64,000 bases of DNA from Oculina patagonica (GCF_052425735.1 NC_135758.1:29636001-29700000); one strand, 5' to 3'; positions 27,576 through 32,251 are shown, counted from the first letter of the stretch. The notes: a model not told the origin generated them from the sequence alone. Numbers and translations: made by a program.

Positions 27576-27585
27576 TTTCTATTTC
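27576..27585 (-). promoter_or_regulatory. ISRE/IRF-like element upstream of paralog 2
   Basis: GAAATAGAAA on the coding strand, 70 bp before the ATG, within a block conserved with paralog 3. Confidence 0.5.
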
Positions 27586-28275
27586 GAAAATTCAACAGAG
27601 ATAACAAGACGGAAATAAGAAGGAAAGAATCGGACTTCATTAACAAAAAAATGAACTAAAATTGAAAACGGAAACACTGAGTTGCTGACCAATTGCAATG
27701 CACTAAGGAATAAAACAATACGCTTCAAGCCAAACATTATATGAAGCACTTTTTTTTACTACACTTCAACAAGTATGCGCGCGCGTGCAAGACAAAGTTT
27801 GCAACATCCGCGCTCAAAGGCTTCTGGGTACGACTGCAAAGTTCTCTGGTTGAAGATTTTGCATGGTAGATATAACTTGGAATAAAGTGTTTTCCAAAAA
27901 AAACAATAGACAAGAATACTTTTAGGTATATAATAACAACCCAGGATTCTTTTGTGGTCAGAATAAAATAACCGTTTGCACGCTTTGTAGAAGTGAGCCT
28001 GAAGTTTTACAATGTATACGTAGAACTCGTTACGCAAAACGAGTAAAAAGGTAAGAAGGTTAAAATTACGTTATTAACAATGCAATATACGCTAGAAAGC
28101 GAAAAATCAAAGGATAACGTAAATTGTAAATCGGGTAATAACAATTTTTTCAACTGAAGTTTCCGTTTTTCGAAGAGTCTGAATTCGGAAGTTGATATTC
28201 AGTTTATGTCCCAGTAAAGGTTCGTACACACTGTAAACAATGCGTATCAAGTGCCAGAATTGCCCCTGACCGTCC

Positions 28276-28954
28276 TTACTGGACAGAGGATGCACTTCGC
28301 TCCATTTTTTCTCTTTTGTTATGTGCAACTCGCTTCAACGCCTCACGATAAGACCAGCTGCTAGACTGTATCTTGCTGTTCACGTCTCTCTTCTCTCTGA
28401 GCAGGTTTAGATATATAATAATGTAAATAGTGTCCACAATTAGTTTTTTTAAGCTAAATACTTCAGACACTTTAATAAAGTATTTCATTCTTTCATTCGT
28501 ACTTTGCTGCTAGCGTCTCCCACGATTTCTTGGAATTCCAAACTTCCGTTTCTGAAAAGAACTTCACCCGCCTTTCAAGATACTGGAACTCTATCCCAGA
28601 TCTATAGTGCGCCCGGTATAAATTGGCCGGTGTACTCTGGATCTGGGGTACATGTAGATTAACGAGAGCTGTAAAAAGAAGCGAAGTCGTGGAGGTAGCA
28701 ACCACTATCGGTGCGAGGCGAGGACTGTCCGAGACCAGCATTTTCCAGGCCAATGTTGACGCCACGCTAGCTGTGGCTCCTAAAGTTCCTGTGAAGATTG
28801 ATGCGCAGTGAAACCTAGAATCCCATTTGCTGTAGTATTCTGCGGCTATATAATGAGATGCAGCTGTCACTTGCAAGCTCTTTCGCATTTTACGGAGTTC
28901 ATTCTGTAAGTTTTGCCGTTTGATTCGATCTTCTGATGAAATACCTCCGCCCAT
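28276..28954 (-). pseudogene. SLATT-like paralog 3, interrupted by an 88-bp insertion (possibly removable by splicing)
   Basis: ORF 28493-28954 stops at ...AKYE*. The homologous C-terminus (NLLREKRDVNSKIQSSSWSYREALKRV...) resumes at 28407 and runs intact to a stop at 28276. Confidence 0.75.
28408..28495 (+). mobile_element. Extreme 3' end of a non-LTR retroelement (CR1/L2-like tail)
   Basis: Ends GACACTTTAATAAAGTATTTCATTCTTTCA: AATAAA followed by a (TTCA)n-like tail. Absent from paralogs 1, 2 and 4. Confidence 0.6.
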
Positions 28955-28998
28955 TGCGTTTTGCGACAGTGATCTGTATAAATTTAACGGAACTAAAT

Positions 28999-29008
28999 TT
29001 TCGCTTTC
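28999..29008 (-). promoter_or_regulatory. ISRE/IRF-like element upstream of paralog 3
   Basis: GAAAGCGAAA on the coding strand, 45 bp before the ATG. Confidence 0.55.
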
Positions 29009-29101
29009 GAAAACCGAGAGATCAAGCTAAGTGAAGGCGGAAATATAAAGAAGGAAAGGATCGGACTGATCGCCAAAATATCGTAAACCAAAGAAACTGA
29101 A

Positions 29102-29520
29102 TATATATATGATAAATGCAAATGCGGCCTTACACTACTGAATACCTGAAAAAAAATTTCAGCCTCTGAGCAGGAGTCGAACCCACGACCTTTGCGTTGC
29201 CAGTGCAGTGCTCTACCACTGAGCTATCAAAGCCACATGAGAGTGGTCGTATATGGGTAATCCTTTTATGGTGGACATGATACTCGGCCCAAGTATATGT
29301 GAAATAAATGAATGTGTGTCCAGTAGTAGAAATGAAATATATATATGATAAATGCAAATGCGGCCTTACACCACTGAATACCTAAAAAAAAAATTCAGGC
29401 TCTGAGCACATTCATTTATTTCACATATACTTGGGCCGAGTATCAGTATCAGTAGTGTAAGGCCGCATTTGCATTTATCATATATATATTTCATTGCTAC
29501 TGCTGGACACACATTTATTT
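29102..29520 (-). mobile_element. tRNA-derived SINE with internal direct and inverted duplications
   Basis: Minus strand at ~29165-29235 has A box ATAGCTCAGTGGTAGAGC and B box GGTTCGACTCC. Flanked by direct repeat AGAAACTGAA (29092-29101, 29521-29530). Confidence 0.7.
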
Positions 29521-29714
29521 AGAAACTGAACCTAAACAATTGTCACTTTACTGTAACGGTACACGAACAAAGGAATAAAACAATGTGCTCCAAACTCCAA
29601 AGCAAACACGTTATTATTTGAGTAAAATGGTATAAAGAGTGAAACAACAACAACAACAAATCAAAGGCTCTTCGAGCAACCTCATGGTAATTCGATGAAG
29701 TGGCGTCCTTCGCT

Positions 29715-30830
29715 TTGTTTTTCAAATAAGCGTTCAAGAATGTAACGGTCTCACTTCATTTGCCTTTAAATGCTTTTTTTTTTTTTCATGTGAGTTGCGT
29801 CAATGGGTCACTGATGCTTTGTGCTCTCCGGCTTCGAAGCGCAAATTCTATTTTTCACCACCAAAATAAATTGTAACCTTTGAATATGGTTTTTACTGTC
29901 TTAGATGCGATAAATTGTGTGTTCAATTACTTTTCTGTCAGCACATATATAATATACATACCGGGCAGCGACTAGCCTCCCACGCAGTCGTTCTTAGGGG
30001 TGATCGCGTTACACTCCTCCCCGCGATTGCGTTACACGGTGTGGAACACAATCGCCCCTAAGAACGACTGCGTGGGAGGTTAGGCAGCGACAAGCGTTGT
30101 TATTTTTTGAACAGCCGATGTAATTTGAGATCTGCTCGCCTCAAAAAGATGAAAAACGGATGACGTGACACGAGGTGACGTAGCGCGAAACAGAAACGTG
30201 CTACGCATTTGTGTTTTTCCAGTGAGCTGAAACGTTTATTAAATCACGTCACATGCAATAATAATTTTCTATAACAGTTTAAGCGTAACTATATGTAGTC
30301 CATAGGTGCTATCAGTAATGTCACAATCTCACTTAATTTGCCTTCGAGTGTTTTCTTGCGTGAATGGGTCATTGATAGCTTTTTTTCTTCAAATAAGCGT
30401 TCAATAATGTAACACAATATCACTTTATTTCCCTGTGAATGTTTTATTTTTCCATGGGAATTGCATCATTGATGGTTCGTGCTCTCAGGCTTCGTAGCGC
30501 GAATTCTATTTCATCACAAAAATATTTAAGTGTAACCTTTGATCCTTTTAAGCATTAAGTAAATTTGTTTTTTAAATATGTTTACTTTTCTGCCAGCACG
30601 TATAGCGTTATTTTAAGCAGCGAATAAAATTTGAGAGAAAGATGCGCGTTTTTGCACGACTCAAAAAGATGAAGAACGGATGACGTGACACAAAGATGAT
30701 GTGACGCGAAACAAAAACGTGCATGAATGTTGTGTTTACTAAAACGCTTCTTTGAATGTTTTCTTACGTGAATGGGTCATTGTTAGCCTATGCTCTGAGG
30801 CTTCGTTGAGCGAATTATATTCTCTTTTAT
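29715..30830. repeat. Diverged local tandem duplication
   Basis: TTCAAATAAGCGTTCAA..AATGTAAC recurs at ~29720 and ~30388. CTCAAAAAGATGAA.AACGGATGACGTGACAC recurs at ~30140 and ~30660. GTGAATGGGTCATTG recurs at ~30360 and ~30768. Confidence 0.65.
29973..30082. mobile_element. Hairpin MITE with 9-bp TSD
   Basis: TAGCCTCCCACGCAGTCGTTCTTAGGGG / CCCCTAAGAACGACTGCGTGGGAGGTTA. TSD GGCAGCGAC. Confidence 0.75.
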
Positions 30831-31491
30831 CACCAGAGGATAAGTGTAAGTGATCCTCTTTCGATTTGTTTTGTGAAATTCAGTTTACTGCCCTGAAAGA
30901 GAGAGACCCTGGAACGAGGTTGAAGAATAATTTGTTTCTGATTGACATGTGCTGAATGCGTTTAAAAGACCTTTCCATCAGCACGTTTCTCGTTTAATGA
31001 TAAATTAATTGCGGTTTGATATCAGAATCGAGTGAGTGAGTGAGTGAGTGTTCGAGTGAGAAAATGCGGCCCATAACATAACCTCATTACCATTCGGTAA
31101 AAACGTGCTGCAAATAACGTTTTTAAAGAGTGACTGACGTTTTTGAAAAGTGCTTCATGTAACATTTTATAACAATGACTTGTCACGCAAGGGGTACCCG
31201 GGTCCTAGAGGTTGTCACTCTTCTTTCTTCTATATTAAAGCGAAAAAGCTGTCGCGGGGAAAAACCCTGGAACCAGGCTACGCAAAGGCAATTTTAAGAA
31301 TAACGAACGATTTATGTTGATAGAAAGCGAAACTATCAAAGGATAATGTAAATAATTAATCAAAGTTCCCGTTTTTCGCAGAGTTTCTAGACGGAAGTTT
31401 GTTATTCATCCAAAAAAGCTTCATTTACTCTGCGAATAAATTTGTATCCTGATGTCAACCAAACTTGAAACTGCTAGTATAAACATCGGCG

Positions 31492-32118
31492 TCAGTTGCT
31501 CGACACAGGATGTGCTTCCTGCTCTGCTGTGCTCCTCGCTTTCGCTTGTTTTTCTCTTTCCCTGTCCTCAATTTTCTTCAAAGCTTTACGATAAGCCCAG
31601 TTCTCGGATTTTATTTTGCTGTTTACTTCCTTCTTGTCCTTGAGAAACTTTTCGTACTTGGCTGCGAGCGTCTCCCACGCGACTTTGGAATCCCAAACTT
31701 CCGTTTCTGTAAAGAACTTCACTTGCCTCTCAAGATACTGGCATTCTATCCCAGATCTAAAATGTGCTTGGTATAAATTGGCCGGTGTATTCTGGATCTG
31801 CGGTAGATTTACTAGCGCTGTGAAGAGAAGCGAAGTCGTGGAGGTCGCAACCAAGATCGGTGCAAGGCGAGGATTTTTTGAGACCAACATTTTCCAGCCC
31901 AGTTTTGACGCCACGCTAGCTGTAGTTCCTAATGTTCCAGTGAAGATGGATGCGTATTGAAGCCTCATATCCCACTCTCTGTAGTGTTCTGTTGATATAT
32001 AGTGGGACGCTGATGTCACGTGCAAGCTATTCTGCATCTTACGGAGTTCATTCTGTAAGTTTTGTCGTTTCACACGATCTTCCTCCGTGATCTTTCCAGA
32101 TGACACGCTCGCACCCAT
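31492..32118 (-). CDS. SLATT-like two-TM effector, paralog 4 (208 aa, intronless)
   Basis: Intact ORF starting MGASVS, with the same motifs as paralogs 1-3. Confidence 0.8.
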   Translation of the reverse strand: MGASVSSGKITEEDRVKRQNLQNELRKMQNSLHVTSASHYISTEHYREWDMRLQYASIFTGTLGTTASVASKLGWKMLVSKNPRLAPILVATSTTSLLFTALVNLPQIQNTPANLYQAHFRSGIECQYLERQVKFFTETEVWDSKVAWETLAAKYEKFLKDKKEVNSKIKSENWAYRKALKKIEDREREKQAKARSTAEQEAHPVSSN

Positions 32119-32171
32119 AGCGTCCGGCAGCGTTTGGCAAAGATCGTTAGAAAAATCAAGAAAACTTTAAA

Positions 32172-32251
32172 TTTCACTTTCGATAAGCAGGGGTAACTTG
32201 CCGGATATTGAACAGTAAGATACGTTTCACCGAGGAAAGGAAAGTGAAAGT
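32172..32251. promoter_or_regulatory. Two IRF-E/ISRE-type elements upstream of paralog 4
   Basis: TTTCACTTTC (32172-32181) and GGAAAGGAAAGTGAAAGT (32234-32251), in opposite orientations. Confidence 0.6.

Follow-up and report, generated by a model that had tools for sequence, protein, structure and literature searches.

A conserved ISRE-like promoter element in a coral family of predicted SLATT-like genes recurs in the same genome at STING, IRF and GBP-like genes

How is a small family of coral genes, whose products have a predicted SLATT-like fold, switched on, and does its promoter tie it to innate immunity? We address this question in a 64,000 nt stretch of the Oculina patagonica genome (NC_135758.1:29636001-29700000; this whole stretch is called the window, and coordinates are positions within it), which contains four intronless paralogs, P1 to P4, all on the minus strand. 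Three of them, P2, P3 and P4, carry the motif GAAANNGAAA on the coding strand a short distance before the start codon. An earlier note on this DNA had listed six such sites in and around the array, likened them to interferon-stimulated response elements (ISRE), which are bound by interferon regulatory factors (IRF), and proposed that the genes are wired into a programme like that of vertebrate interferon-stimulated genes (ISG). On balance we think it probable that the GAAANNGAAA elements are functional cis-sites of the ISRE or IRF-element (IRF-E) type, which an IRF would bind and which would make the P2-P4 lineage inducible; the wiring of these genes into an ISG-like programme has the standing of a well-founded hypothesis rather than of a result.

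The sites and genes on which the argument turns are as follows, clades A and B being the two branches of the protein tree described below.

27576..27585, minus strand: proximal ISRE-like element of P2, GAAATAGAAA, 70 bp before the ATG; its spacer, TA, is the least IRF-E-like
28999..29008, minus strand: proximal ISRE-like element of P3, GAAAGCGAAA, 45 bp before the ATG of a broken gene
32172..32181, minus strand: proximal ISRE/IRF-E-like element of P4, GAAAGTGAAA within TCGAAAGTGAAATTTAAAG, 54 bp before the ATG
32240..32251, plus strand: distal ISRE-like element of P4, GAAAGTGAAAGT; inverted, its coding-strand form being ACTTTCACTTTCC; some 122-131 bp upstream of the ATG
28095..28104, plus strand: 3' element of P3, GAAAGCGAAA, reading TTTCGCTTTC on the coding strand; paralogous to the element at 31323-31334, and 590 bp upstream of the P2 ATG
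31323..31334, plus strand: 3' element of P4, GAAAGCGAAACT, reading TAGTTTCGCTTTCTA on the coding strand; 159 nt past the stop codon, within an RNA-like contig
23647..24255, minus strand: paralog 1 (P1), 202 aa, clade B; free of ISRE-like elements within 600 bp of its ATG
26907..27506, minus strand: paralog 2 (P2), 199 aa, clade A; ATG at 27506
28279..28954, minus strand: paralog 3 (P3), clade A, broken; a 153-aa frame (28493-28954) runs into a stop codon and the tail (28279-28494) lies in another frame; ATG at 28954
31492..32118, minus strand: paralog 4 (P4), intronless, 208 aa, MGxxxS start, SLATT-like predicted fold, clade A; ATG at 32118

Rechecked in the sequence, all six sites have the coordinates and strands that the earlier note gave them, and its distances of 70, 45 and 54 bp to the ATGs of P2, P3 and P4 (27506, 28954 and 32118) are likewise correct. 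Every site matches GAAANNGAAA, and five of the six have the G/C-pyrimidine spacer typical of IRF-E. Local enrichment was found: in a genome of ~38% G+C the motif occurs 20 times in the window against 8.3 +/- 3.1 times in dinucleotide-preserving shuffles, none of 100 of which reached 20, and the IRF-E-like subset GAAASYGAAA occurs 7 times against 1.45 +/- 1.18, with five of these seven copies flanking P3 and P4. In P4 the distal copy lies ~65 bp upstream of the proximal one, in inverted orientation. On the plus strand the footprint AAATTT(T)C-NN-TTTCGA is common to the promoters of P2, P3 and P4. The accompanying claim, that this footprint persists while its flanks diverge, stands for P4 compared with P2 or P3 and does not stand for P2 compared with P3, which remain alignable over ~120 bp upstream, so that the real proof of constraint has to come from other species.

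One further match, GAAACTGAAA at 32305-32314, was rejected as a promoter site because it falls within a high-copy repeat. This repeat (32280-32420) lies directly upstream of the P4 promoter and reaches a summed contig depth of up to ~14,000 in three runs.

For comparison we took ten loci, syntenic or related, from six further coral assemblies (labelled L0xx), and located 36 family genes in them; the array is syntenic, lying between SNAPC3 and a BTB/BACK gene. GAAANNGAAA stands on the coding strand at -41 to -81 of the ATG in 15 of the 36 genes, against a background rate, over the 270 kb of these loci, of 0.019 per 100 bp per strand. An unbiased count of all 65,536 gapped patterns of 4+2+4 form (XXXXnnXXXX) between -120 and -20 of ten first-in-array orthologs ranks GAAAnnGAAA first, in nine of the ten promoters; the runner-up, a pattern overlapping it, is present in five, and in four other 100-bp intervals the top gapped pattern was found in at most three promoters. 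The number of synonymous substitutions per site (dS) between P4 and its orthologs is 0.68-2.09, and in 6 of 7 comparisons the 100 bp 5' of the motif are no more alike than shuffled sequence. Across orthologs the eight core bases are intact and the NN spacer alone varies (GT, GC, TA, TT, AC), a combination that marks selection acting on two GAAA half-sites. These comparisons support the view that the motif is a selected cis-element, conserved in position, of the P2-P4 lineage across corals.

Individual sites can be followed from species to species. The P4-type proximal site is kept in orthologs from L007, L017, L008, L011, L012, L013, L014 and L015, and the distal P4 element recurs, with a different spacer, at -123/-126 in L006_10001 and at -118/-121 in L007_13348. 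The P2 ortholog L006_13853 has GAAAGCGAAA at -73, and the P3 ortholog L006_11770, an intact gene, has an identical TCGAAAGCGAAAATTTAG. In the window P3 is broken, yet the TCGAAAGCGAAAATTTAG element of its promoter is perfect. A reversed copy, TAGTTTCGCTTTCTAAC, lies 133-375 nt past the stop codon of P3 and P4 in the window and of genes in L006, L007, L017, L011 and the further species L018-L022. Two genes each in L006 and L007 are followed by such a copy (one in L007 reads TTTCGATTTC), the copy in L017 reads TTTCTCTTTC, and the spacer differs in those of L007_10001 and L017. The Logan contigs L009-L010 and L018-L022 are of genomic type, carrying no start-site information, and they extend the layout to one more species.

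A maximum-likelihood tree of 31 intact proteins separates clade A (16 rows; P2, P3, P4 and their relatives) from clade B (15 rows; P1 and its relatives) with 100/100 support. Both clades hold members from most assemblies, which makes the split older than these species. Twelve of the 16 clade A genes have GAAANNGAAA 41-81 bp upstream of the ATG, and three more have a version altered at one core base; the single gene with neither is a recent duplicate whose upstream region has been replaced. The comparison with related species that the earlier note had called for, with clade A genes drawn from seven assemblies, at dS of 0.7-2.1 and with flanks at random identity, bears out conservation of the motif. 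In clade B the motif occurs in 2 of 15 genes, which form one recent pair, L012_6170 and L012_9022 (minus strand). The two read GAAAACGAAA at -76/-79, a motif that could have been gained independently or through an exchange of promoters between the clades.

A different motif marks the promoters of P1 and of most of its clade B relatives. The ETS-like ACTTCCGG, an ETS/GABP-like core-promoter motif, is present in none of 17 clade A genes and in 9 of 19 others; it stands upstream of clade B genes in L006, L008, L013, L014, L015 and L016, at -79 to -205 in other corals, and in the window it is found before P1:

24808..24815, minus strand: ETS-like ACTTCCGG, 560 bp before the P1 ATG; clade B promoter mark

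Its position of -560 in P1 would seem to reflect either an insertion of ~480 bp or an intron in the 5' untranslated region (5'UTR). The distribution of GAAANNGAAA and of ACTTCCGG on the tree indicates that promoter type tracks the ancient duplication. We propose that an ISRE-type promoter became fixed in the clade A lineage before the sampled stony corals diverged and would have been kept since by purifying selection, and that the sister clade B, including P1, may run on an ETS-type promoter with constitutive expression.

The same motif recurs at immune genes unrelated to the array. An immune set of 21 genes (IRF, GBP, viperin and STING genes, identified by Pfam/NCBIfam search) was compared with 39 Ras-family control genes over the 600 bp before the first in-frame ATG. 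GAAANNGAAA was present at 10 of 21 immune genes and 4 of 39 controls (Fisher p = 0.0019), and GAAASYGAAA at 7 of 21 and 1 of 39 (Fisher p = 0.0019). Those with the latter comprise STING genes (two paralogs, one with a site at -242 and one with sites at -260 and -222), IRF genes (two, independent of each other; -155 and -81) and three of four secreted GBP-like genes. The motif background used throughout rests on the window, the loci compared and the 39 control promoters; OAS (PF10421) was not found in the genome and hence lies outside this comparison. At the STING, IRF and GBP-like promoters the motif is not followed by ACTGAT, the block that accompanies it in the array (see below), and it thus acts like a portable factor site, not like a component of a single type of core promoter. 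The form GAAAG[TC]GAAA was observed on the coding strand, 81-260 bp before the ATG, at the tandem STING genes C2:10880568-10893200 (L042, L043) and at the IRF genes C4:15074324 and C4:14310439 (L025, L027), an arrangement that hints at IRF autoregulation and at IRF control of STING.

These gene classes are those of the antiviral programme described in Nematostella and Stylophora, in which IRF, STING and GBP homologs are induced (PMC8713801, PMC13319465); here the same classes share a motif with the array genes. The cases differ in that the response in those species was defined by expression, with no cis-element (the words 'motif' and 'ISRE' were not found in the text of PMC13319465), and in that protein searches found the array gene family in stony corals only. 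If the shared motif has a shared reader, clade A genes would switch on together with the STING, IRF and secreted GBP-like genes that bear it. At its widest the proposal is of an interferon-independent IRF regulon in stony corals, in which GAAA-[G/C][C/T]-GAAA would drive STING, IRF1/2-like and secreted GBP-like genes as well as a lineage of SLATT-like membrane effectors of bacterial type, and in which, after the ancient duplication, one lineage would have been inducible (ISRE) and the other constitutive (ETS); we offer this tentatively, as a possible scheme that falls short of being a probable one.

Could an IRF read this sequence? IRF DNA-binding domains recognise AANNGAAA, and an ISRE consists of two or more GAAA repeats (PMC7819612); the earlier note's identification of the motif as an IRF core agrees with this, the coral sites having two GAAA half-sites 2 nt apart with the spacer alone varying. 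They share with vertebrate ISRE/IRF-E sites (PRDI-type) this half-site arrangement, textbook IRF-E cores being seen in GAAAGTGAAA and GAAAGCGAAA and the sequence at 31323-31334 being GAAAGCGAAACT, along with a promoter-proximal position, copies in both orientations, and an occurrence at STING, IRF and GBP-like genes elsewhere in the genome, which also encodes IRFs with a conserved recognition helix. They differ from vertebrate sites in that the coral proximal site lies ~20 bp from the putative transcription start, and in that the 3' CT extension is mostly A/T-T. The full ISRE consensus including its 3' extension is GAAANNGAAACT; this extension is present at 31323-31334 and in L008 (GAAAACGAAACT), and the proximal sites continue with A/T-T (AATTT, TTTAA).

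That the host possesses IRFs, as the earlier note had stated for cnidarians in general, is evident from at least six loci in the genome with the PF00605 IRF DNA-binding domain. The domain at locus L026 matches solved IRF1/IRF2 DNA-binding-domain structures with E values of 1e-34 to 2e-36, and its recognition helix, WKTNFRCALNAL, keeps three of the four GAAA-contacting residues of IRF1 (R82, C83 and N86, with S87 replaced by Ala; residues from PMC7819612). In cnidarians both cGAMP and poly(I:C) induce IRFs, which also serve as markers of immune cells (PMC8713801, PMC13319465). Binding to ISRE is reported for IRFs from amphioxus, shrimp, scallop and oyster, as summarised in PMC13524488, and the cases given there (oyster CgIRF1 at the CgIFNLP promoter, shrimp LvIRF at Vago4, and the amphioxus and scallop IRFs) resemble the coral one in that IRFs drive antiviral genes in an interferon-less or interferon-like setting; those cases come with binding and reporter data, whereas the coral case is argued from sequence alone, and the coral targets are SLATT-like proteins with two predicted transmembrane (TM) segments. 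Paper searches found no literature describing a cnidarian ISRE. The most likely reader of the motif would be one or more IRF1/2- or IRF4/8-like coral factors. To our knowledge cnidarians have neither interferon nor a known ISGF3, so in any such reader an IRF would have to work by itself or as a dimer.

Within the array the motif is embedded in a larger promoter layout. A second block, (T)ACTGATC, lies downstream of it at a gap of 18-23 bp (29 once), the distance from ACTGAT to the ATG varies between 10 and 48 bp, and an A/T-rich stretch directly follows the motif on its 3' side. In the window this initiator-like (Inr-like) block is found at three genes:

32142..32148, minus strand: Inr-like block of P4, AACGATC (family consensus (T)ACTGATC); candidate transcription start
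27549..27554, minus strand: Inr-like block of P2, ACTGAT, 21 nt past the motif
28972..28977, minus strand: Inr-like block of P3, ACAGAT, 21 nt past the motif

A fixed gap from motif to ACTGAT combined with a free gap from ACTGAT to ATG suggests that the block holds the transcription start, and it probably does. Two sequencing runs bear on this point; we call them RNA-like, a guess that rests on a covered gene body, an uncovered promoter and very deep flanking repeats. Their contigs at 31075-32120 (X1) and 31549-32130 end 2 and 12 nt upstream of the P4 ATG, and depth is zero over 32181-32241. Because these contigs end short of the promoter, the proximal P4 motif appears to lie outside the abundant mRNA, and the contig ends are consistent with a start near 32142-32148. 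The X1 contig also covers 31323-31334, which is therefore probably part of the 3'UTR. A polyA raw-read run contributed five reads only, too few to indicate strand or ends. A third contig (X2), which is DNA-like and represents a related allele, has substitutions or indels at 32147, 32151, 32191 and 32194 and leaves both P4 motifs unchanged. The layout that we propose would run from the ISRE-like motif through the A/T-rich stretch and 18-23 bp of spacing to (T)ACTGATC with the start, a short 5'UTR and the ATG; P4 would add a second, inverted copy ~65 bp further upstream, and P3 and P4 a reversed copy ~160-220 nt past the stop codon.

Other factor sites were sought in 17 clade A promoters. STAT/GAS sites (TTCN(2-4)GAA) and heat-shock elements (HSE; alternating nGAAn) were present in none of them, kappaB (GGGRNWYYCC) in one and non-recurrent, and canonical TATA in three at no fixed position; readings as AP-1 or as cAMP response element (CRE) gave no recurring pattern.

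A layout this regular might also be expected of a conserved functional element with a reader other than an IRF, either a core-promoter substitute for TATA at -31 to -22 that sets basal transcription, or the site of a PRDM1/Blimp-like zinc-finger repressor, in neither case with a link to immune induction. The strict strand and the 18-23 bp distance to the ACTGAT block fit such an element, as do the A/T-rich stretch right after the motif and the lack of a canonical TATA at a fixed position in clade A promoters. PRDM1 sites, of the ACTTTCACTTTC type, overlap IRF sites, and the distal P4 site is exactly of this type. However, two invariant GAAA cores around a free 2-nt spacer form the IRF half-site pattern AANNGAAA (PMC7819612) and not a TBP pattern, the motif stands without ACTGAT and at variable distance before STING, IRF and GBP-like genes, and an inverted copy 65 bp upstream together with a copy past the stop codon is unlike a core-promoter element; we judge a non-IRF reader, the main rival, to be rather unlikely. 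Action at the RNA level, in which GAAANNGAAA or UUUCGCUUUC would control translation or stability from within the 5'UTR or 3'UTR, would account for the 3' copies at 31323 and 28095, which lie in transcribed sequence (X1 contig, 31075-32120) and hold one orientation relative to the gene in several species. It would not account for proximal sites that the RNA-like contigs leave uncovered, at zero depth, for the opposite orientation of the distal P4 site, or for the motif upstream of unrelated immune genes, and we give it very little credence. Lower still do we place the view that the motif has no function and is an A-rich 10-mer inherited by tandem duplication and recurring by chance in AT-rich promoters. 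The low G+C content of the genome, the ~120 bp that P2 and P3 share upstream and the loss of a core base in some orthologs speak for this view, but window counts exceed those of every shuffle, the motif ranks first among 65,536 gapped patterns with 9 of 10 orthologous promoters having it, it survives beside randomised flanks at dS up to ~2, and it is clade-specific on the protein tree.

Several points weigh against an IRF-read ISRE, and our preference for it is graded with them in mind. The gene sets of the enrichment comparison are small, hand-chosen and partly paralogous, with ATGs assigned by rule, and viperin and seven cytosolic-type GBP genes have no motif within 600 bp of the ATG. The P2 spacer, TA, makes a poor IRF-E. 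The P2 orthologs L007_16256 and L017_10001 have a copy decayed by one base (GAAAGCAAAA), and the P4 ortholog of the closest relative, L006_10001, has lost the proximal core (GAAAATAAAA), so constraint is not absolute. If ACTGAT is the start, the motif would lie at about -31 to -22, which is the position of a TATA box and unusually close for an activator site; this start position is derived from contig ends only, in runs whose RNA nature is a guess. The 3' copies lie inside the transcript, where they could conceivably act on RNA. In Nematostella, 40-60% knock-down of each of five IRFs left cGAMP-induced genes unchanged (PMC8713801). What the analysis shows is that the motif is present, where and on which strand it lies, how deeply it is conserved and how specific it is to one clade, that the host has IRF genes, and that the motif recurs at other immune genes; IRF binding, inducibility and the start position are inferred. 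Since other corals have retained the motif for so long, P2-P4 appear to be good candidates for infection-induced defence genes.

What these genes encode is also relevant to a defence role. P1-P4 all begin with MGxxxS, in which M1, G2 and S6 are near-invariant among 43 homologs. A genome-wide search of the 529-Mb genome found no copies beyond these four, and protein searches matched the family in stony-coral data only, the named matches being Desmophyllum pertusum and Montipora capricornis. The earlier note had called the genes SLATT-like, a label that we use for the predicted fold. An AlphaFold model of the product has a confidence score (pLDDT) of 77.6, with the hydrophobic middle or TM part poorly modelled (<50), and in a Foldseek search against AFDB clusters 25 of 30 matches were named SLATT or SMODS-and-SLOG-associating 2TM (E 4e-4 to 0.15, TM 0.28-0.58). 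By contrast, scans of P1-P4 and of 43 family members matched no Pfam family at E <= 1, including the SLATT/PycTM models; faint precomputed PF18967 PycTM marks exist on some homologs. 'SLATT-like' is thus a reasonable and fair description of the predicted fold, and such a fold fits an effector role. The coral product would share it with the bacterial SLATT/PycTM two-TM effectors of CBASS- and Pycsar-type defence; unlike these, the coral genes are solitary, have a eukaryotic promoter and do not lie in an operon with a nucleotide cyclase, and their products are of N-myristoylation type (MGxxxS). In a comparison of 26943-27242 with 31540-31839, the 3' halves of P2 and P4 are 92% identical, and their 5' halves 81%, a difference that suggests gene conversion within the array.

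Cnidarians are known to have IRFs, STING, RIG-I-like receptors (RLRs) and many ISG homologs, all of which respond to cGAMP or poly(I:C) by induction, with a cis-regulatory logic that is undefined and IRF knock-downs that were inconclusive (PMC8713801). The element described here offers a concrete, mutable sequence with which IRF-driven antiviral transcription can be tested in the absence of interferon. As a type it is known; what is new is to have a defined and conserved example in a cnidarian, linked with STING and IRF genes as well as with a SLATT-like family, and it singles out this coral-restricted family as a candidate inducible effector. The ISRE-bearing and ETS-bearing clades provide a natural contrast for studying how duplicated defence genes may split into inducible and constitutive copies. 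Should the proposal be true, an IRF-to-effector circuit ending in a CBASS-style pore or membrane effector would predate interferon.

The interval between P3 and P4 holds two further features. A tRNA-Ala gene (29161-29234, minus strand) lies within an 81-nt direct repeat (29092-29172/29328-29408, 91% identical) with inverted-repeat sequence alongside, and the segment 29092-29408 looks like a tRNA-carrying insertion. Nearer to P4, the region 29700-30800 contains two to three copies of a ~480-bp unit with GATGACGTGACAC...GACGTAGCGCGAAAC, a CRE/ATF-like TGACGT motif.

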